Assembly: GCA_977016875.1 (NCBI GenBank)
Contig: CDRNST010000104.1
Coordinates: forward strand, 3,224,001 to 3,288,000
Length of the DNA stretch: 64,000 nt
Origin: Pavona decussata
Taxonomy: Eukaryota
Reading direction: 5' to 3'
The notes beneath the pieces were generated by a model that was not told where the DNA came from, made no database searches, and worked only from the letters and a program-made list of their open reading frames with translations. Of the stretch, positions 26,555 through 42,629 are shown one piece after another. Position numbers and translations under genes: made by a program. Position 1 is the stretch's first letter; every line of letters starts with the position of its first letter.

Positions 26555-28367
26555 CCAAGAAACTGAGTTCTTTGTAACCTTCAGCTCGGTAATCCCTAAT
26601 TTGTTTAACTATTAGACGTTTTACAGGCAGTAGCATTAAAAGTTATAATGCCAAATATTTTGTTATATCTGGAACGTAAGGGTTAGTGTCGTCTAGCCAG
26701 GAGAATTTCCTGCAGTTGTCCCCAATGCTTTAGTTTAAAGTAAGCTTAGAGGGAGGAACTAAAATATGTTCGGGGTAATAGCCGTTTTTCTGGCGTACAA
26801 GTTCTTTACAGTTTTTTAAATTTTAATGGCATCGAATTACACTCTAGCTCCAGTCGAACGAACGTTTACAATCAGGAACTGGGCACCGACCTGGACTTAC
26901 ACTTCTATTTTTTATATAATTTTAAAATTTTTATTTTATATTATTATACTTATACTATTTAATATTTTCTACTATTTTCCCACTGATCTCCGTGCCGGCC
27001 ACAACCGGCCGCGATTTCGCGCACTTTCGCGTTCGGTTCCTGTCTCGCCTTGGAAGGCTTTTATTTTTGTCCCCTATTGTTCTAGTAGCAGCTATTCTTT
27101 GCAAGGTAAACAACTGGAAACAAATCATGGCTGAAGTCAGATTTGAGCCCATGTCCACGACACATTATTTCTATAGCCAAGCTTGCTTTAACCATCCGGT
27201 TGATAAATGAAATCATCAAGGGCACTCAAAGGTTCATTTAAGCGATATCTGTTCGGAAGAAGCAAATCACCTTAGAAAGTTGCAAAGGCGCAATGTCAGC
27301 TCCAAATTCCGTAACAGTGGAAAACTAATTCCTTTTTGTTTTAGAAGCTAAGGGGCAAATTTGTTGTTAAATGCGAAAAAAGGTCAGCTAGACAGCTAGC
27401 ATTTTGGTAGAGCCATGAAACAATAGCTCGTAAATTCCGGGAATGAGATTCTATTTCCTAAAACTTCTCCAATTTAAAATTTTCAGCTGAGGCATCATAA
27501 TAGATCAAACTGCATTTCATAGATATGCTTTTATAAGGCCACAGAACGATGTTGGAATACAAGGAACAGCATATAAGGTTTTATTTTACTTGAATGTTCT
27601 CGTTGGTTGCCCCTAATTTACTGTATTCGTTTTTTTTATTTCATTTATTAAGGAGTGTGTATTTTTTTCTGAAAACTATTATGTTCTATAAGAGGACGTT
27701 TTAGTAATATCTTTATCTTCGTATTCCTCTCTCCTAGTAGAAAATTTGCTTTGTTATGTTTTAAGAAAGTGCATATTTCATCCATGACGTAATGGGTGTG
27801 CCAAAGTACCGACTAAACGACATCTGTATTATGACCACAAGCAAGTAATTGTTTCGATTAGATCATAAAATTAGCCAAAAAGTTTCATACAATTGGTGGC
27901 TCTTGTATCTTCTGTTTATAATTTGTAGGGTTTGATAGTGTTTTTCTTAAAAAAAGAAAAAAAAAAAATGGTAGTTTTCAGCAAGAGTGAGTGTTAGGAG
28001 ATTGGGGTTAATCCATAACAACTCCTCACAACAAAGAACCTGATCTCATGCGATATTTATGAGGCGATCAGGTTGAACATCAAGAAATTTGTTTCATCAC
28101 TCAATGCAAAGAAATCGATGTAAAAGAGATTGAAGACTTAAAGATATAACTGGATTTTACTAAATCTTTTCAACGAGTCGATGAATTAAAAACAGAATTT
28201 TTTGTATTCCGAGGTTTTAAAATGTTAATGAGGGCGTGGCCAGTCACCCATAAATTACGGATAAGTAGTTAAGTCATGTGTATTACAAATTCTAACCACA
28301 GATGAGATCAATGCAAAACACTATACTAAAACGAAACACTGGCTGCAGTGAATCAGTTAAGAAGACA

Positions 28368-29640
28368 ATGTCGAGGGTAAGGTTTTTGAGTATTAACATT
28401 GTTCTTTGCTTGCTTGTTGTGGTAGACGCCCTTCATGATCAAAACGAGAGTCTTCGAGTGGATGGACGAAAAAACATGATAAACGAAGATAGCCTTGGCC
28501 AAAGAAGGGGCAAAGTAAAAAAGAGAAACACCGTGGACTTCGAGGATAAAACCAGCGACAAGAAAGAAGGAAGCTGGCAGCCTCTGAATGTGAGAAGGAA
28601 GCGAAGCCCGTGCGATGGTGGTTGTCTAAGTACTTGGGGAGGTCCATGGTTTCCTCCTTATGGATTTGGCTGTGGTTGTGGCTGTGGTTGTGGCGGTGGA
28701 TGTGGCGGTGGTTGTGGTTGCAACCAAGGCTCGTGGTGCCGTAAGTTATTCTTTATTCTTATGAAGCAGTCCTAAATAAATTTCTAATGAATGAGATTGA
28801 AATGTTGATGTGAAGAGGAATTCCCTCCACGAAATTGATATTGGAAGACAATTTCATGTTTCCTTTGGCTTCTGTACCATAGTATCTATATCATGACCCT
28901 ATTAGTCAGTGTAGTCTTTAAAAAAATATTCTTTGTGGTAAGCACCAAGTGAATGGGGGATGGAATAATTTTCTTGCAATATCGTCCGTTTGTCAGCAAA
29001 TAACTAGGGTTAACATAGAGTAAATTTAGTATGGAGTCCTGGTTAATATGACTAGTCTTCCGTGGCAGTATCTTTGCTGAAAAGAAATACCTTAAACCTT
29101 TACCCGCCGACAAATGGAAGAAATACAATGGCAAAACAACTCCGAAAAACAGCTTGCTTAAAATATAAGTATAAGCAAGAAGGGAAAACAACAAGATATA
29201 TATGTGATTTTTCGATTCTTATTCTCTTCTTGCTTATACTTAGATTTTAAGTTAACAAAATGTTTTTGGACTTGTTGTTTTTCTATTATAAGAAACACCA
29301 TTTGTAAGAAACCTATTGTAAGAAACACATTTTCTAGAGGACCCTTATGTAAACCACTTTTTGCGACGTTGGCATTCCTCATTAAAAATTACCCTCATCA
29401 CCTCATTTGAAAGAAATTTTTATTTTCCTGCTGGAAATTATATGAAGAAAGTAGACACTTGAAGCACATCAGTGAGAAAAGGAGCAGTTGCCCACTCAAT
29501 ATATGTTAAGGTTTAAATGTATTATTTTGTGTTTTTCATCTAAAGCTATTGAAGCTGCAGATGCAGCAGCAGGAGGAGGAGGAGGAGGAGGGGGAGGAGG
29601 AGGCGGAGGAGGAGGAGGAGGAGGAGGAGGAGGAAGATGA
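28368..29640 (+). CDS. Gene D: secreted Cys/Gly-rich protein with poly-Gly tail
   Basis: Exon 1 is 28368-28740 (signal MSRVRFLSINIVLCLLVVVDA; RRKR|SPCDGGC..GCGCGCGC..WC; donor C|GTAAGT). Exon 2 is 29546-29640 (PIEAADAAA-G20-R*). Homologous to gene E. Confidence 0.75.
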
Positions 29641-31839
29641 GGAAATCCATGAGGAGACGGAGCAGGTGATTTGGTATGAAGATAATCTATCACAACTATT
29701 TATAGTTTAGTTACCACCAAACCAGAAGAGGATTAGTGATACTAAATTTAAGGTAGCCTGCCCTTTTTCTTTGTTACTGCTTGCGTTGCTCACTTCACAG
29801 CGAGACTCTCTCAGTTCCTAAAGAGATTCCAATACCTTCAAAAGCGGCCCGTGTTAAAAGATAACAAGTCTTGCTTCTTGTCTACCCACCAAACGTATTT
29901 TGGACCACTGTATCAGACTTAGATTCAGCTGGTTAACACGAAAATCTCGATAATTTCCGCTATATTTACAATATATTTTATGTCATTGGCAATGACAGCA
30001 ACAAATGCTTGTTACACTTTTTTTTCCAGAGCACCATGAGTTTCAGAAAAGAAGACGATTGTAACGCTCCTTTTACTTTTGAAGTTTATCAGAATGGTAT
30101 TTCCTTACCAAGGAACATTCATCGCTCGTGCAGACACATTCGCAAACAGCAAATAAACCAACAAATGTAAACTCACCGACAGAAAAATAAGAATCAAACG
30201 AATAAACAGACAACAACATCAAACGACGAAGTATACATTCATCACTGATGGAAACCTAGTGCATAGTTTCAGCCGGAACGTCTCAATAACCTGTCCTTTA
30301 TGGTCGTCGGGGCAAGATTAGTCTTTCAATAGATGCGCCAGTGCCCCATGACTAGTCGTTGCCTTAATCCGTTCCAGTAAATGGCGCGTACAACGTTCTT
30401 CTGAAGGACTACACTCATCCCGACAACCATGCCACTCAAACTGGGATTCAACAAGCAGTGAAATACGTGTTAACGCAACTTACGTATTCTGGTATTTTGT
30501 TTGCTTTTTACGCAGTGTTACTCAAAGAAAAAAACAATAAATAAGAAAATAAGAATATGATATCGTTTAATGTGGTGATTTGAACCGACGTGTATTTAGG
30601 GACAATTTGTTAAGTACTGTTTATCATAGCAATCCAGTTAATCAGGTGTGCAAACGTGTGTGTAATAAAGTGGATACAAGGGGTGCACGACCGAATGATA
30701 TTGGACGATTTGGTCAAATTATATCAATTTTGTGAGGTTTTGTGACTTGCTTGAAGTGGTTTTGAAAAAGAACCAGTTTTCCACAGCCTTCAAAAGTAAG
30801 CTACGTAAAGTCTTTATTTACCGAGGATAGCACAAAATAGCGTTCATAAGAACAGTAACAAGCAAGTGGCCCTTCTAAAAATGCAATATAAATTAAAATA
30901 AAATATAATAAATCAAGAATAACACTACAAAATACAATAATATCACAATAAAAAATTTAAATAAAAAACTACTTAAATTTAGAAAACAGACTAAACATGC
31001 AAGTAACTAGTTTAAAAACTGCTGACTTTTGAAAATACAATTCTATACTAATACTGACCGGCAGCTAGACTCTCTATTCTTTGTGAGACGTGGTAAATTT
31101 CGAATTCAGTTCTCTGTTTGTTTTCTTTATAAAATCTCAAAATCTAGTTGTCTTAAAGAGCGAGAAAGTTATAAAATTTAGTAAAATATAAAAAAATGCA
31201 TGACTGCAGTTGTAGGTTTTTAAAGTATAAGCAGTCAATCGTATTGGACAAACTGAAATTTTCCTGTCGTTGTCGAATTGTCCCGATAAAATTGACAAAT
31301 ATCTACAATCCTCGCCAATTGAATTAGGGACACTTGGCTCTTTTTGAAAGTTTTTTTCCACTAAACGTTGCCTCAACAGAATCAAATCTTTGCTGTATGT
31401 CGTTCATTGATGTAATCCCCCGCCTCCTGTTCAATGTTGAGCATTAACACATGTGCGTGGATGCATGACACCCCCATAAATTCGTCTTTGTTCATCAACA
31501 TTGTAAGGGCAGTTGAACCTTGTGTGGATTGCCCCACCGACGCCTCAGCTTGTCTCGAACATTTTGGCCAGGATCGTAGTTCGTGTACAAAATGTTGCAC
31601 AAATGAAGTTCGTAACTGGGTTGTGTGAAAAAATCCATCGATTTCATTATACCCTCCACTCCATGCCGTTTCATTAGCTCATGAGTTTAGAAACTTCATA
31701 TAGTGGAAAAAGTATTTTACGGATAAGTTTATGTTTGGATTTTCGGGAGTTTCTCCTCTTTAGACAGCTTTTTCAGGGTTCTTAAGGGAAGGCTGTGGAG
31801 TTTGCAAAGCTTGAACTTTCATAGTGGTGTGATTGCATT

Positions 31840-32154
31840 TTTTCACCCACAAAATTTTCTACTGGATAACTTTCTCCAAAAACGTTTCTTTTTGAAGTGG
31901 CATACTGAATGTTACATGCATGCAAAAAAATCAAGAAAGGTCACCGAGCAAAATTTCGAGAAAAAACAAATGTTTCTTACAGCCTTTATTTCCGGTTCTC
32001 GCGATTTTGCGCTGTAATTCAACTTCCCGTGTTGTGCGCGCGCGACTTTTGATAAACATTTTGATTCATTCAGCTAATTCGTACACCTAGCTTATGACGT
32101 GGGTGAGTTACGCGCGCGCACGCACGCGGCTAAACCCCTTTCGAGCCCCCTTAA
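31840..32154 (-). mobile_element. DNA transposon end (TTAA-terminated); inverted relative at 38039-38340
   Basis: ..aaacccctttcgagcccccttaa vs ttaaggaggctcgaaagggcttttagccg, with ~300 bp of reverse-complement similarity. Confidence 0.6.
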
Positions 32155-33098
32155 CTTAACTCTTTTGCCTGAATCAGAAAACCACTGAGCAGTGCTGTAT
32201 ATGATAGGCTTTTTATCTGTTTTTGTGCCCCTGGGAGAAGAAAGAACCAACAACAACAACTTTATTCTACCCCTAGCTACAGAGCACTACAGCTGAAACG
32301 ACAAGAAACGTACAATCCCTCTGGGACAAAAAAGAACCAATCTTGATAAAGCAAAGACGATCGTCTTACATTGAAAGGAATTGTCTTTGAAGCGATTCTT
32401 TCATCCTTACCCGAGTCACTGGAACAAACATTTAAATAATCCAACGCGAAATGGATAAGCGCACCTTAAGATAATTATCCATCTTACATAATTTGCCTTT
32501 TTTTAAACTTATTCACTAGCTTAAAGTTAAGTTTTGAAGGGTGTTCAATACCTCATTATAATCGTAACACCAGAACCAGAGTAACCACTCTGGCCAATAC
32601 AAGTACAATAAAAACTAAACCCAGGCAATGCAACTGTAAACAACCGTTTCAACCTCAACTTTAATAGGCGCGAAGCGTAGGGAAACGACGCGTGCAAGCA
32701 AGTCGAGATCTCTGAAATGCATATGATAATATTTCTCAACCAATAGATTTCTCCATTCCCGATAACTCTAACCAGAAGCCGTTTCCCTCGGATTTGCTTC
32801 ACTCAAATACTGTACGTATACCTCCGATTTCTCGAGCCCTCGATAACACGAAACGCCCATAAACTCGAACCAATTCTTGGCTCCATAGGCGCAAATTTTG
32901 AACCAAGATAACTATTTAGAAAACCCTTGGGTGAAAACGACACCACGGCAATTGATCCCAATTTGACTTCCGATTTCTTGAATCCCAGAAATTGGGATTG
33001 CACTATCGCAAAATGCCGCTACTGTAAATACCGTTTAGTTCTTGAATGTAATATGTTCTGTTTGTATGGATCTCCTTTTTAACAAATGGATAAGGGGG

Positions 33099-33135
<37 letters not shown>

Positions 33136-34622
33136 GAGTAGAAACAAGTGGTTTGTTTATCAACAGAATTGATAAATAACGGTAAATAGGCCACTGTAAA
33201 GAGATTATAGCGTTCTTTACGGTGGGCAATTGACTTTTACTTACCAAATTCGTTGATAAACCAAACGTTAAACATTCGTGTCTTTTAGTTCATTATTTTA
33301 ATGAAGAGAACAAGACTTTTAAATTTGAAAGACATGTTTCCCTATGTTATTTAGGTCCTCACGCAATCTACTCCCCGAAAAAACGGACGACCCAAAGAAG
33401 GGCTGCGAAGGAGACTACTCTGCAAAGGATATAAATGAATACTTAAAAGTTTCTACTGCGTTTTGTGAGCATATCTTGAAGACTGATTGCATTGCTAAAA
33501 ATTGAAAACTGCACTTAACAGCTAAACCTAAAATATTACAGATCGATTAACAGTAGCTGATATATTTTTTGTGTACCCAAAAACGAACAAACAAATTCTT
33601 GACCCTAAGGTAACATTGTTGTACCATCATTCCAATATTAACAAAGATTTAATGACCTTGTATGATAATAAAAAAATTCACGCTGGCTTAAAGATATTAA
33701 TTTTATTTTTCGTGTTAAACCAACACATTGTCCTTACCACTCGATTATAAAATTCTTATCTTCGCGCCACCGTGTAATGTCCTCTATGTATACGAATTTC
33801 TATATTATGTGGTCGCATGACGGAACCAAAAATATCCAATCAGATACAGCGAGAACCTGTGCTACCATTTAAGTAAAATTCGGTAAAATGGATACAAAAA
33901 TGATGTTTAAATCGTGTCATGGGCAGTGTATGATCCATCTCATATCTGAACTATATGGCACGAGTATATTCAGTGTTTGGTCGCATGAAAGACACAATAA
34001 TGTCCTTTAGATACAGCGACCACTCATAATGTGATCAGATGTGATGCCTGTCTTCGTGTATCTGCAGTTCTTTTGTGTGGTGTTGCCATTGTCAGTTGAA
34101 GTGAAGAAAGTTTCCACGACTGAGGACTTTGGTTTCAAAATGTTTCCCTGTACTTCCTGACGGAAATAATTTTTTTGCTAGTTTTCACGAGAATGAATAA
34201 TTCATTCTTGTCATAGGGGGTGTGTTCTTGTGCTTTCCGCTCAGCAGTTATAATACTACCACAAGCAAACTGATTGTTCAATTTATTTAGATCATCAATT
34301 TGGTGACCAAAATTGTTGACAAAACTGTCCAGTTTTAAAGAGTTGTATCTACAGTTCTAAATGGTAGGCCTAACTGAAAAGTCATTTTGTACCATTAAAA
34401 AGTAAAGAACTAGAAAAGCAGTTGAAGATTGAGGCTGATATCAAAATTTTGGTATAAATACATCCCGAGGCCTTGCATTGTTAATGAGGGATGTCTGATC
34501 ATTAAGAAATTTTTTTCATGGTTATGTGTTTACAATTATGACCTCAATGACTCAAGGCAAAGCTTTACGCTAGCGCTAACAACGCATTTAGAAATCTGCT
34601 CTTGATGAAGGCAGTTTACGAT

Positions 34623-35527
34623 ATGGAAAGGTCGTTGTTTTTCACTTTCAAACTTGTTCTTTGCTTGGTTGCTGTGGCAAATGCCCTTCATGATCAAAAA
34701 AACAGTCTTCGATTGGATGGACGACTGAAAAGCATCCTGATCAATGAAAAAAGCCTTGGCCAAATTAAGGGCGAACTAGAAAAGAGAAGCACCGTGGACT
34801 TCGATGAAAGAACCAACGACAAGGAAGAAAAACGTTGGCAGTCTCTGAACGTGAAAAGGTTTAACGTTGGAAGGCGAAGCCCGTGCGGTGATTGTCCATG
34901 TTCTTGTGGATGCACATCAGGTCCATGGTATCCTTCTTGGGGATGTGGTGGTCCATGGGGAAGTGGTGGTCCATGGGGAAGTGGTGGTCCATGGGGATGT
35001 GGTGATCCATGGGGATGCACCGGGAGCCCCTGGGGTTGCAATGGAGGCAGATGGTGCAGTAAGTTATTCTTTATTCTTGTAAAGCGGTCACTATATAAAT
35101 TTCCAATGAATGATTTCAAGATTTTAAGAACAGTAAGACTCAATATGTGATACTGAAATGTCAACCTGGGACGAGATTTTCCCACACAGAGTAAATTTAG
35201 TATTTCTGTTCATACGACTGATCATCCGCCGTATGAAAGTGTCTTTGCTGAAAAGAAACACCTCATTTGACAGAAAATTGTATTTTCCTCATGGAAATTA
35301 TAGGACGAGCGAAGAGACTTGAAGCACATCGGTGTGAAAAGGAGAAGCTGCCAACTTAATGTTAAAGTTTAACTGTTTTAACTGTGTGTTATACATCTAA
35401 AGAGATTGACGTTGAGGATAAAAATGGAGGAGGAGGAGGAGCGGGAGGAGGAGGAGGAGCTGGAGGAGGAGGAGGAGCTGGAGGAGGAGGAGGAGGAGGA
35501 GGAGCCACGATGAAGAGGAGCAGGTGA
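34623..35527 (+). CDS. Gene E: secreted Cys/Gly/Trp-rich protein (GGPWG repeats) with poly-Gly tail; F/D hybrid
   Basis: Exon 1 is 34623-35058 (signal MERSLFFTFKLVLCLVAVANA; GRR|SPCGDCPCSCGC; GGPWGS/C repeats; donor A|GTAAGT). Exon 2 is 35403-35527 (KIDVEDKN(G5A)3G8ATMKRSR*). Confidence 0.8.
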
Positions 35528-35595
35528 CGTAGCATTGATAATCTATGACCGCGATTTATAGTTTAGTTACCACTGTGCTACCAGAAAGGATACGT

Positions 35596-35910
35596 CATGT
35601 AATATATCAAACACGAGAAGGCGTGTTTCATTAGATATCCAAACAGTGCCAAGAAGGTTGGAAAAAAAAAGGGTGGGGGGGGGGGGGGGGGCGCAGCCGA
35701 GCTTTTTTTAAACGACTTCGAGGTGTTTGGGTACCTGATAAAACACGTTTTCGAGTGTTTGATATGGCTTTTCAAATTATCTATACTTCTTGGAGAAATT
35801 CAAGGCTAAAGTTGGCAAAATTTTAAGGTAATTAGGAACACATATCCAAACCACTGTCACAGAAGTGATTTTCTTTCTTTTCTCTTGATGAATTATTAAT
35901 GCATTTGAGA
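35596..35910. mobile_element. Interspersed repeat inserted downstream of gene E, absent from the gene D copy
   Basis: Partly palindromic (atatcaaacacgagaa..gtgtttcattagatatccaaaca / tgtttgggtacctgataaaacacgttttcgagtgtttgatat) and interrupts the D/E alignment. Confidence 0.65.
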
Positions 35911-37550
35911 AAGTAAATTTAAGCTAGTTCCCCCTCTTTTCGTAGCCACTGCTGGTGTTGCTCACTTAAGAGCGAGCCGGTCTCAGTTCCTACAGAGATT
36001 CTAATACCTTCCGTAAGCGACCCGTACCGTCCTAAAAGTAACAAATGTTCTTCTTCGTCTCTTCCATAAGCCCTGTCCGTCTATCACCAATCCTATCTTG
36101 GATCACTGTATCAGACTTAGGTTCAGCACAAATCTTGATAATTTTCGATACATTTACCGACTTTATTCAATATACTTTTGTCATTGGCAATGACAGTAAT
36201 AATGATTGTTACCCTTTGTTTTCCAGAGCACCATGGGCTTGAGAAAAGAAGATTCTAACGCCTCTTTTAAGGTCGAATGTTATCCGAATGGTATTTCCTT
36301 ACGAAAGAATATTTATCGTTCGTGCATACACATTCGTAAACAGCAAATAAACCAACAAATGTAAGAGAACCAACAAACAAATAATAACCAAACGAAAAAA
36401 CAGACAACAACACAAACAATGAAGTATACATACGTCACTGATGGAAACCTAGTGCATAGTTTGAGCCGGAACGTCTCAATAGCCTATCTTACATGGTCGT
36501 TGGGGTAAGACTAGTCTTTCAATAGATGCAATAGTGACCATGACTAGTCGTTACCTTAAACCGATTCTAGTCAATGGGGTCGTATAGCAGTCCCTTGCAA
36601 GACTACGCTTACCCCGATAACCATGCCACTCCAACTAGGACTCAACGAGCGGTAAAATACGTGTTAACCCAACTGATGTATTCTGTTATTTTGTTTGCTT
36701 TTTACGCGGCGCGGTGTTACTGAAGCCAGACAAACAAAAAAAAAAAAAAAAGGAACATCATAAATGAGGAAATTATATTGTTTAATGTGTGATGTAATCC
36801 AACTTGACTTTTAGAAACAATTTGTTAAGTACTTTACATCAGAGCAATGTTAATCAGATGTGTAATAAAGTGGATAAATGGGGTGCACGATCGAATGGTA
36901 GTGGACAATTGTTTCGGGACTTACTTGTAATGGTTTTGAAAAAGAACCAGTTTTTCGCAGCTGAAAGTTAATCAAGAGAGACGTTGTAAATTTCAAAGTT
37001 TAGTTTTCTGTTTGTTTTATTGTACTTGAACCATGTCTAGATCCGCCCCACCGAGGCCTCGTCCCGAACATTTTCGCCAGGATTGTAGTTCGTGTACAGA
37101 ATGTTACACAAATGAAGTTCGTAACCAAGATTGGTGAAAAATCCCTCGATTCCATTACACCCTCCACTCCATGCCGTTTCGTAGTTCATAAGTATAAAAA
37201 CGTCATATAGTGGAAAAGGTACTTTACGGATAAGATACTGTTTTGGATTTTTTACCTTTTTGGTCAGCTCTTAAGGGAAGGCTGTGAAGTTTACAAAACT
37301 AGGTGTCAATGGCATGCATCTTAATTAAGAAGAATCGAATTTTATTAGCAAGTTTTCAACGAGAAATTGAAATATCAGAGGTCTGAAAACTTAGTCTTAT
37401 ACATCAGGCTATAATTTTGAAGGTTTCGTCTCAATGCTATTGGACCGAGGTAATCCAAAGAAAGTATCCAGCACTAAACAGTCGAGAGGTTGCCTCTTCG
37501 GGTTTACATTGGCTCTACCATTTCTCTCTACATGAGATACACAAATTGAA

Positions 37551-37715
37551 TGCGACAGTAGTGTGAACATTCGCCTCCCACCAATAATCTCGCTCGGATT
37601 CGATTCGCGGAATTGACGTAATATTTGGGTTGAGTAAGTTGTTGGTGTCTCGTCCTTGCTCCGAGAAGTTTTCTCCAGGCAACTCCGGTTGTCTTTTTTC
37701 CTCTCTCCAAATGCC
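37551..37715 (+). mobile_element. tRNA-derived SINE (same family as 2430-2586)
   Basis: ttcgcctcccaccaat..ggattcgattc..gggttgagt..gttgttgg..ctcgtccttgctccgagaagttttctccagg. Confidence 0.6.
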
Positions 37716-40700
37716 ACGTCGATCTGGAGAGTGTCTCCATTTATTCCTCGGCGTTGAATACACAATTTTATTTTGGCTGGTTAGGGATACGGAATGGAGG
37801 GAATTGGAAATGAACACTCCTTTGTAACAGGCCTTGTGAAACTCGACCTGATACATTATTTTTCTCTTCCTGGTGAAAATGTACACTGCTTGGGCCCTTC
37901 TAGTCTCGAAAAAGTTCCCTGAACGATGTTATTACTCCTTTGGGTATGATTTAATTTTGACAATGAGGTTTGCTGCTGAGGGATAAAATTCTTGAACGAA
38001 TCATGGAAACGGTAAGGCAAAGACGACCGGGTTACATTTTAAGGAGGCTCGAAAGGGCTTTTAGCCGTGTGCGCGCGTGTAAGCCACCCACGCCATAACT
38101 AAGGTGTACGCGTCAGCTGAATGAATCAAAATGTCTATCAAAAGTCGCGTGCACAACACCTGAAGTGGAAATGCAGCTTAAAATAGCAGGAACCGGAAAT
38201 AAAAGCTGCAAGAAACATTTGTTTTAATCTCGAAATTTTGCTTGTTAACCTATCTTCATTTTTTGCATGCATGCAACATTCAGTATGCTTCTTTAAATAG
38301 AAACGTTATCCAGTATAATTTTTTTTGGTGAAAAATGCCTTTTTTGATATAACACAATATCTACTGGATAACGTTTTGTCATATTGCCAGAGAAGTTAAA
38401 GAATTTAGGGTGATTTCCATCAAAGCTATAAAAACGGAAGGTCATCGATTTAGGTTTTTGAGGTATTTTGCAGAAACTGCAATTTAGAGGTCATTTGTGT
38501 GGAGTTCACTTCTTGCCATGGTAACCGCTATGATATTCGAACTAGCTTTAAAGTATAGGCTATTAACTGAGTTACAAAGACATTTATAGTTTGAACACAC
38601 GATCAGAAACAAGTTTTTGTAATCTTTCATCATTTCACAAACAAACTTGAGCGTCCTTAAGGAATTGCCTTTGAAGCAATTATTCCATATTATTAAGTGA
38701 ATGATAATGTTTTGTCTAACAGGTCAAACCGGAATCAACCTTACCCACGCCACTGGAACAAATAATTTAAATAATCCAACGCGAAATGGATGAACATATC
38801 TTAACTATCATGAGTGTTAAATTAATACGATGGTGCAATCCGATCCGTTTTACGGGATATTCAAGACTAACAACTGAACCAGGAACTCAACAGACTGTTC
38901 ATTCGCGTGGCAGGCTTTGGTTAGGAGAAATAAAACGCTAAAAAACGCTTATAGATACCCATCAGCATAATCAAACACGTGATCGTCCAATCTGTTAGTA
39001 TTGGCTGAACGTACTGAATACGTGCGCGCTGTGAATCGGCGTGAGTAAGAAAAGAAAGGGCCCAAATTGGATCACTAAGGTTGGTGAAACCCAATTTTCT
39101 GATTACCTTCAACGATTATAGCCGTTCACGCACGGCTATTTAAAAAAATAACACTGTATCTTATTTAAACTCATCGACAAGATGAGCTTGGGAGCTGGTG
39201 CCTAAAAGATGGAGGGGCCTATAGCGCGAAAGTGTAGCACTGCCTTGGAGGTAACCATGGCAACCAAGCGAGCGCCAACCACCCGGCACCGTCACACTGA
39301 ACGCATTCAGTGGAATACTTACCACAACCCATACCTATCTATCCAGGGGTGTGAGGAGTAGGAATAAAAACCAGCAGATATCACAGGCCGTGAATAGCAA
39401 TGAGCCGCAAAGATCGGCAAAGCAAAGCACAGCAAAGCAAAGCCGAGCTGAGATATGCAATCACATGAAAACCCCAGCAGACTCAGGGGCCATCCCACAC
39501 AAGCCTGCCTGCCTGGGGCTCAACCGCTGTTCCGCTAGCATTGTCTCGAGGTTAACCTTGCCTAAATTATATTTAGCCACATAAAATTTAAAACTGAGTG
39601 GATATAAAAGGTATGAGGACTGGCCTTTGGTATTTCAAAAGAAATGGAGAAAAATCCGCCATTTTTTCTATTGAGGTCGTTTTTAGGATCGAGTTTTTTG
39701 TCAATTCAAACTGCCTTCCCAATTTTCACGCACGGCAAATAGAAGACGGATCTTTTATTGGAAAAAGTCCTTTTTAACTTTGAAAATTGGTGAACAGGAA
39801 CCTTCCGCCTCTGTAGTTTAAAAACTACTTGTTGGAGTTGCGTTTGAAAATTTTGCCTGTTGGGTTGGAGAGCTACGGTTTTAAGCACACGAGTGATTAA
39901 CAATGGATGTCAAAACTAACACTACCCATTCAAGAAAACCACTTGACTGTAAAATATATACAATTTCCACGACATTTGAAAACCTGTCGCGCAATGAACA
40001 AGGAAAGCGAAAACGTCCGTCATCAGGAGCTCTTTTCAGAGCTCTTCGAAACCCTGATCTGGTATTCCCTTGGAGCAGAGGGCGTGCAGACCAATGAGAG
40101 TCACCCAGTTGACGCCTTACCGCTAAAGGATCTATAAGTTTTGCCATACTGTAAGTAAATATCCCAAGAACAATAGGGATTATGTGTGATGATTTTAAGT
40201 TGAGTGGCCAAAAAACGAACAAGCAAATTCTCGACCACAAGGTAACACCGTTTTTTATCATCATAATAAAACAATTGGCTTTGACAATTCCTTATGTAAG
40301 TAGTTCAGAACAGCATTTCCTTACATATGAGTTTATTTTTGTTGGTCAAATGACAAAACCAAAATATCCAATGGGATACAGCAAGAACCTGCGCTCCCAT
40401 TTAACTGAATAAAATGCGGCAAAACTGGGTATAAAAATGATGTTTAAATCGCGAAATGTGTAATTTAGACACATCCTTTATACGTGAGCTCTATGGAACT
40501 AGTTTATTTAGTGCTTGGTCGTATGACAGATACTATAATGTCTACTGAGTGGATACATCGAAAATTGGTGTGATGTTTGTGTTCGTATATCTACAGCTAT
40601 TGCAGTTGTAGTAAAGAAAGTTTCCACGACTGAGAGACTTTCGTTGTAAAATGTTTCCCTTTACTTCCCAGCGGAAAAGTATTTTTGGTAATAGTTTTCA

Positions 40701-41120
40701 CGAGAATGTATAATTAATTCTTGTCATAAGGGGGTGTGTTTTTGTGCTTCCCGCTCAGCAATTATAATACTACCACAAGCAACTGATTGTTCAATTTAGG
40801 TCATAAATTTGGTGACCAAAACTGTTGTTAAAATTATTTGTCTTAAAAAATACGTATCTACAGTTCTAAATGGTAGGCCGTAAAAGTTAATTTGTACCAT
40901 TACAAAGAAAGAGCTAGAAGAGTAGCGGAAGATTGAGGCTGATATCAAAGTTTTGTAATAAAAATATCCCGAGGTCTTGAAATGTTAATGAGGGATGGCT
41001 TATCATCAAGGAATTTTTTCATGGCTTTCTGGTTACAATTAAGACGTCACTGAATCAAGGCTAAGCTTTTCGCTCACAGCGCAGTTTAAAAAATTGCTCT
41101 AGATTCAGGCAGTTTACGAA

Positions 41121-42629
41121 ATGGAAAGTTCGTTGTTTTACACTTTTAAACTTGTTCTTTGCTTGCTTTGTACGACAACTGCCTTTTATGACAATACAGA
41201 AAACTTTTCAAAGGACGGAGGAAGATATCCACTCGAAATTGACCAAATATCAAATCTAATGCGGAGAGACGTCATAACACCTGAAAACAGCTTCGTTTTA
41301 AATGAACTTCAACTGGGGCAAGAAAATACCCGGGAAGAAAGAGACGAAATCAAAAACAAAGAAAATAGGAATCGTCAATACCAAAGGTTCAATAGCAGAA
41401 GGCGATGCTTTCTTGGTTACCCGTACGATTGTTCTACAGGATTTCTAGATCCCTTATTAGAATGGTCAAGTCAATTGGGATGGACACCAGGTCCTCTGTA
41501 TCCGGAGTACGGACCAAATTTTAATCGCGGTTGGATGGGGAGGGGAGTTCCGTTTGGATATAACCACTGTGGATGTGGGGGCCCATGGAGCGGACCAGGG
41601 TGTTGTTGTGGCTGCAGCAATAACGGCTGGTTTTGTAAGTCATGTTTTTATTTACGCATTCTTAAACGTACACTCATTTAGGAGTGTTCAATAGAACAAA
41701 GTGTTGTCAGGACTTATGCTGAAATCATGATACTTGCAATTTTTGTGAGAATTGAAGCAGCTGGAGATGTTTTTAATATCAAAACAATATATTCTGCCAG
41801 AACTGAAAGTTATGAAATTTCGAGATTTAGCTAACACAGTCGGAAACAGAAGATTTAGCTACTTTGCTGAGCCTTGTCTTAGCTAATTAAACTTGGCCGA
41901 TTACCTTGTCAGCAAACATCAAACCCTACCTCTGTTACATGACATTTAATTAAGTAAAAGTCAAAATTGAAATTTTCTATACATTCCCAATCTTTTAAAA
42001 TTTCACTAAAGGGACTATTCTACTCTTAATAGAAATGCCATAAAAGCATCCTTTATCCATTATAGATTTTTTCTGGAAAGCTCTAATGGGTTATTCAGGT
42101 TGTAGCCTGCAAACGAACTTCTCTCAGACCTGAGTTGAGGTAAAATCAAATATTTCTGAAGGTGTCTGCTTCTGAATACGTCTTACTTCGATTTTTGTTC
42201 CGTTCGCTTATAGGTGGTGGCGGTGGTGGTGGTGGAAACGCAGCGGTTAACGACTGTCCTCACAACGTTGCCATGAATAAGGCTTATTTCTCACCAAAGC
42301 GGCCCAAACAGGCTGGGCACTTACCACTATTCCAACCTTTCATGGGAAAGCAGTTTAAAGCTCCACCCAAAATGAAACTAGGCAAAACAAAAGATTTTCG
42401 GCGTGGATACAAGCGCTTCGATGTTCCTTACAGCACTGGTGCCCCTTATGGTGCGGCGCTGCCTCCTGCTTACGAATATCCCTGCGACCCAAGCTATGTC
42501 AATTGGCCGTGCCAAGCTCCGGCTCAACAAAGCTCAATTGCTGACCAAGTTGTAGGGAGTTTGTTTTTGTGGAAACCAAATGAAAATCCTCTGCCAAAGA
42601 AGCATTCGACAGTGAATTCCAAAAATTAA
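41121..42629 (+). CDS. Gene F: secreted Cys/Gly/Pro/Tyr-rich protein (~309 aa)
   Basis: Exon 1 is 41121-41634 (signal; SRRR|CFLGYPYDC..CCCGC..WF; donor T|GTAAGT). Exon 2 is 42214-42629 (ttatAG|GT GGT, in frame with ORF 42162-42629). Confidence 0.85.

Follow-up and report, generated by a model that had tools for sequence, protein, structure and literature searches.

Haemoglobin anti-Lepore genes are β-5′/δ-3′ hybrids that lie between the normal δ and β genes. The CYP11B1/CYP11B2 chimera of glucocorticoid-remediable aldosteronism is a human disease allele for which the change in expression has been demonstrated. Chimeras of the stickleback spiggin B and C genes have been attributed to unequal crossing-over or gene conversion, and their genomic arrangement and breakpoints were mostly unknown (PMC4989455). 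Here, we compare with these systems a tandem array of three coral genes, D, E and F, that lies in a window of 64,000 nucleotides (the whole stretch of DNA that was analysed). An initial annotation had proposed that E is an anti-Lepore-type hybrid of F (5′ part) and D (body).

The three genes are arranged head to tail on the + strand, with an open exon 1 in each. Their starts lie in the order D (28368), E (34623) and F (41121), so that the hybrid E sits between both intact parents. The gene models were read from the sequence by translation and splice phase, and the coordinates and peptides given for the three genes in the initial annotation were all correct on re-checking. Each gene encodes a signal peptide, a charged propeptide with dibasic sites and a Cys/Gly/Trp-rich segment, as read from the sequence; a phase-1 GTAAGT intron follows, and then an exon that opens with poly-Gly. 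The upstream parent D (28368-29640) consists of exon 1 (28368-28740; 124 codons plus 1 nt), an intron (28741-29545) and the poly-Gly exon 2 (29546-29640). The hybrid E (34623-35527) consists of exon 1 (34623-35058), an intron (35059-35402) and the poly-Gly exon 2 (35403-35527). The downstream parent F, taken with its 5′ flank (40334-41120), which carries the family promoter motif at 40969-40994, covers 40334-42629; its exon 1 lies at 41121-41634, and its exon 2, from 42214 to the stop at 42629, encodes poly-Gly followed by a long tail. The reading frames of D and E stop soon after the poly-Gly stretch, whereas that of F runs for about 130 residues further.

Several smaller features of these models and of the window were observed. 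Exon 2 of F (42214-42629) has the same poly-Gly opening as D and E and carries a GSLFLWK motif. The poly-Gly exons are found at 29546-29700 and 35403-35560 and, in a related species termed S2, at 10658-10847 of contig L001. The short tail after poly-Gly differs from gene to gene, reading GGR-stop in D, ATMKRSR-stop in E and ETPGGV-stop in the E gene of S2; in another frame the tail of D (MRRRSR-stop) resembles that of E, which suggests a frameshift inside the GGA run. Positions 7586-8102 of the window are a run of 517 N.

The family is limited to a few corals. Exon 1 of D, E and F matched no Pfam family, a language-model atlas gave an uninformative best score of 0.78, and a HMMER profile search of 1.84 billion representatives returned just three clusters, all belonging to the D/E/F family itself. 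No curated domain match and no protein outside the cluster was found, with cnidarian minicollagen, cnidoin and SCRiP-like proteins considered, and the literature on Gly/Cys-rich secreted proteins of cnidarians yielded no identity for D, E or F. Exon 1 alone served as the query in the protein searches, with no spliced models joined. Cleavage of the signal peptide and processing at the dibasic sites would be expected in all three proteins, and our best guess, from composition only, is that their products may be secreted, proteolytically processed structural or defensive peptides.

E is a chimera with a single, sharp change of nearest paralogue. Upstream of position 34654 it is about 80% identical to F and about 53% identical to D, whereas downstream it is about 80% identical to D and about 55% identical to F. 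The same pattern is seen in the BLAST blocks within the window, which pair E 33810-34693 with F 40343-41191 (77% identity) on one side and, on the other, E with D in exon 1 (34637-35113 with 28382-28794; 70%), around exon 2 (35259-35573 with 29399-29717; 78.5%) and in the 3′ flank (35903-36961 with 29732-30787; 75%). In the three-way MAFFT alignment, the informative sites left of the break number 170 for E=F and 32 for E=D, and those right of it 31 and 111, respectively. The maximum chi-square of 133 is reached for a break at E 34653-34671, a value that was not equalled in any of 2000 permutations (Fisher p = 3e-32). In sliding windows of 80 columns, the E-F identity is 0.76-0.96 upstream and 0.49-0.63 downstream, and the E-D identity is 0.46-0.69 upstream and 0.62-0.85 downstream. 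BLAST, the three-way alignment and the break test thus agree with the initial annotation in placing E nearer F upstream of 34654 and nearer D downstream; the BLAST blocks likewise uphold its statement that the likeness to D reaches into the intron, the poly-Gly exon and the 3′ flank. The absence of a paralogue switch at the signal peptide, which had been named as the outcome that would speak against a hybrid, is clearly not what the sliding windows display.

The exchange interval can be confined to 34654-34670 (+ strand), between the last site at which E agrees only with F (34653) and the first at which it agrees only with D (34671). It holds the 14-mer TTGTTCTTTGCTTG, which had already been named as the place of the switch; the window contains three copies of this 14-mer and no more, at 28399, 34654 and 41152. 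Around the break, D and F are identical today over just 14-17 nt or so. The F-derived part of E, at 33801-34653 (+ strand), comprises a 5′ flank of about 820 bp, together with the 5′ UTR and the first ten codons of the signal peptide; it carries the promoter motif at 34465-34490 and TATAAAT at 34455. Over 792 shared columns it has 80% identity to F (K 0.231), and its identity to D is 53%. The interval lies within the hydrophobic core of the signal peptide and at the same signal-peptide codon positions in D and F, so that the junction is in register and the frame is kept, as predicted for an anti-Lepore origin with its junction at homologous in-frame sites. A signal-peptidase site is predicted after ANA (residue 21 of E), which would place the junction some seven codons before it; the contexts ANA|LHDQ in E and VDA|LHDQ in D were read by eye rather than with a prediction tool. 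Because the break precedes the predicted cleavage site, the secreted product of E would have been wholly D-type at birth.

The 5′ side of D provides a further view of the array. The D-type 5′ flank and 5′ UTR (27620-28367, + strand) are an old paralogue of the E/F flank and the sole copy in the genome. The family promoter motif CCGAGG..TGTTAATGAGGG lies upstream of D (28209-28234) at the same distance from the ATG as in E and F, and weak homology at 60% identity extends back to 27732, or about -640. The D flank is equidistant from the E and F flanks (K2P 0.74-0.80, compared with 0.23 between E and F), in line with the anti-Lepore prediction that it should be an old paralogue equally far from both (K of about 0.75). 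The D promoter is thus a distant homologue of the E and F promoters and not unrelated DNA. Searches of the window species' own 602-Mb genome with E and the D 5′ flank gave no further paralogue of either half of E; they returned just D, F, GGA repeats and a dispersed repeat at 27215-27620. This last element, which lies upstream of D and is also found upstream of D in a second species termed L2, had more than 1000 first-look candidates in the same genome at 68-75% identity.

The homology on both sides of E is not confined to the genes, and the array consists of two copies of one unit. Copy 1 (28399-34653, + strand) contains the D body, the D 3′ flank, a spacer and the F-type promoter of E, and copy 2 (34654-41151, + strand) contains the E body, the E 3′ flank, a spacer and the F promoter; from junction to junction the unit measures roughly 6.3 kb. 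The two copies align in 15 collinear blocks, of which one is inverted (31881-32154); together the blocks extend across the entire spacer, as expected if the spacers flanking E are copies of each other. Upstream of 33801, the flank of E still matches the spacer of F (33576-33620 with 40208-40252) and not the D 5′ flank. Species S2 retains pieces of the unit that are missing from one or other copy in the window; for instance, positions 11715-11913 of its contig L001 correspond to window 31258-31456 only. Given the collinear blocks and the pieces kept in S2, both spacers go back to a single ancestral unit. Identity is 82.5% in the E/F part (n = 806 nt) and 82.8% in the D/E part (n = 1961 nt; p = 0.91), so each half of E has diverged from its donor to the same extent, again as predicted, and the six blocks of at least 150 nt are homogeneous in identity (chi-square 5.1, df 5, p = 0.40). 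The unit has been duplicated, and the two halves of E are of equal age.

Two stretches within the unit drew attention on their own account. RNA-like contigs cover 30053-30548, 400-900 nt past the stop of D (the copy in unit 2 lies at about 36220-36720), at depths of 97, 44 and 3 in three runs. This segment falls where the 3′ flank copies of D and E are most alike and holds no ORF of more than 53 amino acids; it could be a 3′ UTR exon, a noncoding RNA or a repeat fragment. In the spacer between D and E, an element of about 45 nt at 33100-33147 recurs in hundreds of RNA contigs, with a summed depth of up to 12046 in a coral metatranscriptome, and is a dispersed, highly transcribed repeat.

E is transcribed. 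RNA-like contigs beginning at 34545 or 34558 and running to 34974 cover its exon 1 at depths of 100-660, compared with 2-11 for the 5′ flank and the intron; these are Logan contigs from three runs of three studies that are labelled as the same organism, with the RNA type guessed. The difference in depth indicates transcripts that begin at least some 65-80 nt before the ATG. The contigs are interrupted within an 18-bp tandem repeat, the read comparison passed over the poly-GGA exon, and the model of exon 2 comes from the sequence. The ORF of E is intact in three species. Estimates of dN/dS are high, at 0.75-1.05 for E, 0.56-1.05 for D and E overall and 0.70 for F between the window species and S2; the proteins of D, E and F evolve rapidly, whether under weak constraint or positive selection. 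The expansion of a GGPWG repeat in E, reported in the initial annotation, is confirmed: the 18-bp unit of the repeat (34938-35017, + strand) codes for GGPWG(S/C) and is present 4.4 times (Tandem Repeats Finder; 95% matches, score 139). The E gene of S2 has about two copies, and D has a different repeat of the 12-bp CG(G) type (Cys-Gly). Having inherited roughly 850 bp of F-type flank, E would be expected to stand under F-type regulation.

Relatives were gathered by contig look-ups and by word-based searches for proteins, in which exon 1 of each of the three genes was the query. Two other assemblies of the same species (L013 and L014; 99.4% identical) have the same hybrid structure. In species L2 (Logan runs SRR286022xx), E is represented by L002 (91% identical) and D by L019-L026 (P0007/P0008; 87% identical), the latter with the D-type 5′ flank; D and E of L2 both occur in run SRR28602247. 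Species S2 (ENA ERZ26692694; haplotype contigs L001 and L015) has E and F, and a third species, S3 (Logan runs SRR284001xx), has yielded F alone, on 2-kb contigs. The orthologues of F are P0003, P0004 and P0005. L2 and the two S2 haplotypes have the same junction interval (chi-square 108-152, values reached in none of 1000 permutations), and the junction is therefore common to three species. The initial annotation had implied a recent event and had suggested that sister species might have D and F only. Neither was found: E with the same junction is present in L2 and S2, and the event is old. No pre-duplication genome with only D and F was found among the sources of family members, S3 being known just from its 2-kb contigs with F, and an exhaustive protein search together with two pattern scans of JGI metagenome contigs revealed no further species with the family.

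In S2, the upstream block syntenic with window 26603-27003 is followed by 2-4.6 kb of species-specific DNA and then by E and F. Neither D nor a remnant of it was detected between the syntenic block and E on either haplotype contig (blastn with word size 7 and tblastn). The S2-specific DNA at the place expected for D (L001 3080-7700; L015 2220-4257) differs in length between the haplotypes and carries an ORF of 133 amino acids (L001 7057-7458).

Trees and distances date the duplication relative to these species. In the 5′ tree, E of the three species forms a clade (support 94/99), and the F flank of S3 is equidistant from the E-type and F-type flanks (K 0.58-0.62). Together with the common junction, these results suggest that E arose once, after S3 had split off and before S2 did; the S3 lineage is accordingly predicted to be older than E. 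The exon-1 body tree, rooted on F, contains a D clade (97/99) and a trichotomy of the window and L2 E genes, S2 E and D (55/51); in AU tests, none of the placements was rejected (p = 0.35 and 0.22). Distances in the 3′ part are star-like, at 0.27 between the window D and E, 0.31 between window D and S2 E and 0.30 between the two E genes, with a local departure in 36201-36975, where the D-E distance is 0.19 and that between the E genes 0.33. For the 5′ flank, paralogues are further apart (0.23) than orthologues (0.17 and 0.21). From the 5′ and 3′ distances, the two halves of E therefore calibrate slightly differently against S2, a result less tidy than the direct comparison of identities. We read this as a duplication that probably took place shortly before the S2 split, with differences in rate or limited later exchange between D and E. 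The intron of the window E (35059-35402) has lost about 230 bp that are kept in the L2 E intron and in both D introns. A high distance between the window D and E introns from a global MAFFT alignment was discounted because this loss misleads the alignment, and the D/E distances were recomputed from local alignments.

The order D, F5′/D3′, F had been put forward as the product of unequal crossing-over; this is supported, and the four further predictions noted above (for the spacers, the two halves, the junction and the D flank) also hold. We consider it likely that a single unequal exchange between the old tandem paralogues D and F produced the array D, E, F. D and F would have been long-standing neighbours encoding secreted pre-pro-proteins, and F on one chromatid would have been joined to D on the other in a short island of identity in the region coding for the signal peptide. 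The exchange would have duplicated the stretch of about 6.3 kb between the breakpoints in D and F. E would have been left with the promoter, 5′ UTR and first ten codons of F, and with everything that follows from D: the rest of the coding sequence, the intron, the poly-Gly exon and the 3′ flank. The secreted product of the new gene would at first have been a pure D-type protein behind an F-type promoter. S3 would already have branched off, and S2 would have split shortly after the duplication and later lost D by deletion, keeping E and F; with a single event this secondary loss has to be assumed, given that S2 is without D. E would have stayed transcribed, evolved fast and gained its GGPWGx repeat expansion. 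The meiotic unequal crossover as such is presumed: since D and F were very diverged at the time of the event and offered about 14-17 nt of homology, the same product would be expected from a replicative duplication mediated by microhomology. Every model of tandem duplication amounts to the scenario of the initial annotation, with the left gene keeping the old 5′ flank and the middle gene receiving that of F.

The missing D gene of S2 is also where another history gains some ground. Two separate events might have occurred at the same recombination-prone 14-mer, the first giving rise to E, with its F-type 5′ part and D/E-type body, from a donor that is unknown or was replaced, and the second, after the S2 split, giving D its body, 3′ flank and spacer from E, or restoring them to it by conversion over a long tract. 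D would then be a younger chimera and not simply a parent, a status that we regard as improbable for it. Such a history would fit the lack of D in S2, the best body tree, in which S2 E lies outside D and E (though with support of only 55/51), and the 3′ distances, which are slightly smaller between D and E than between the window and S2 E genes, and clearly so in 36201-36975. The tree, however, is not favoured by the AU tests. The old D-type 5′ flank (K of about 0.75) must moreover have had a gene, and there is no other such gene in the genome; S2 would still have to lose the gene bearing that flank. At more than 3.5 kb, spacer included, the collinear homology would make a long conversion tract. 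A single exchange demands that the E/F and D/E parts be equally diverged, as they are (p = 0.91); under two events this would be a coincidence. On balance, we consider two events unlikely.

Similar considerations apply to two whole-gene duplications followed by gene conversion of the 5′ part of E by F or of its 3′ part by D. Conversion is, in general, common between tandem paralogues, and a sharp switch at a conserved island would be expected from it as well. The homology nevertheless passes the limits of the genes and takes in the entire spacer to either side, with its order kept; the flank of E upstream of 33801 matches the upstream spacer of F and not the D 5′ flank, and divergence is uniform along the unit. 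Conversion would need tracts of at least 0.85 kb or at least 3.5 kb that stop precisely at the point at which the other homology sets in, and we judge this course of events to be quite improbable. That E is an assembly chimera, or a dead by-product rather than a functioning gene, is harder still to credit and has in our view only a very slight chance of being correct. A dN/dS near 1 would suit a dead gene, and the splice between exons 1 and 2 was not visible, the poly-GGA exon having been passed over in the read comparison. The ORF of E is intact in three species, however, and the depth of exon 1 is 10-100 times that of the flank and intron in the RNA-like runs of three studies. An assembly chimera was rejected: E differs by about 20% from both D and F, so no mis-join of their reads could have produced it, and the structure is found again in two further assemblies of this species as well as in two other species.

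With a single unequal exchange as the preferred origin, the consequences for regulation can be considered. The D-type product may have come under F-type cis-regulation, with the chimera and not the parent becoming the retained copy; we put this forward tentatively, as somewhat more doubtful than probable. If it is true, S2 encodes a D-type peptide only behind an F-type promoter, and the locus records a natural, dated promoter capture followed by replacement of the parent. For coral expression atlases, the prediction is that E follows F and not D. The case is unusually clean and datable, the promoter, the 5′ UTR and a discarded part of the signal peptide having been swapped with the mature protein untouched, and E thereby separates regulatory novelty from coding novelty. 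It also illustrates the growth and turnover of a small, lineage-restricted family of Cys/Gly/Trp-rich secreted coral proteins through duplication, loss of a parent in one species and repeat expansion. E reveals no new mechanism: the mechanism is a textbook one, and what is new is its occurrence in a tiny coral gene family.

Among the known systems, the spiggin genes resemble D, E and F in being a fast-evolving tandem family of secreted proteins whose intrachromosomal chimeras keep their introns (PMC4989455), whereas the case of E is resolved down to the complete unit, its junction and its age. The promoter-swap chimera of CYP11B1 and CYP11B2 appears, by analogy, to be the closest functional counterpart of E. 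In both cases, unequal crossing-over sets the regulatory region of one paralogue before the coding body of the other, the chimera lies between both intact parents and the consequence would be regulatory rather than structural, although in E, unlike in the disease allele, the regulatory effect is inferred only. The likeness to anti-Lepore globin is one of structure, with the upstream parent, the hybrid and the downstream parent in the same order, the 5′ part of the downstream gene joined to the 3′ part of the upstream gene at a single in-register junction, and a duplicated intergenic spacer. The differences lie in the setting. D and F are about 50-60% identical, compared with about 93% for δ- and β-globin, and their exchange used an island of just 14-17 nt; the break in E falls in the signal peptide, so that the mature protein is not chimeric; and E is fixed and common to at least three species, in contrast to anti-Lepore globin, which is a rare variant. 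With one switch, intact parents on either side, copied spacers, halves of equal age and a junction in register, E has every testable property of an anti-Lepore gene.
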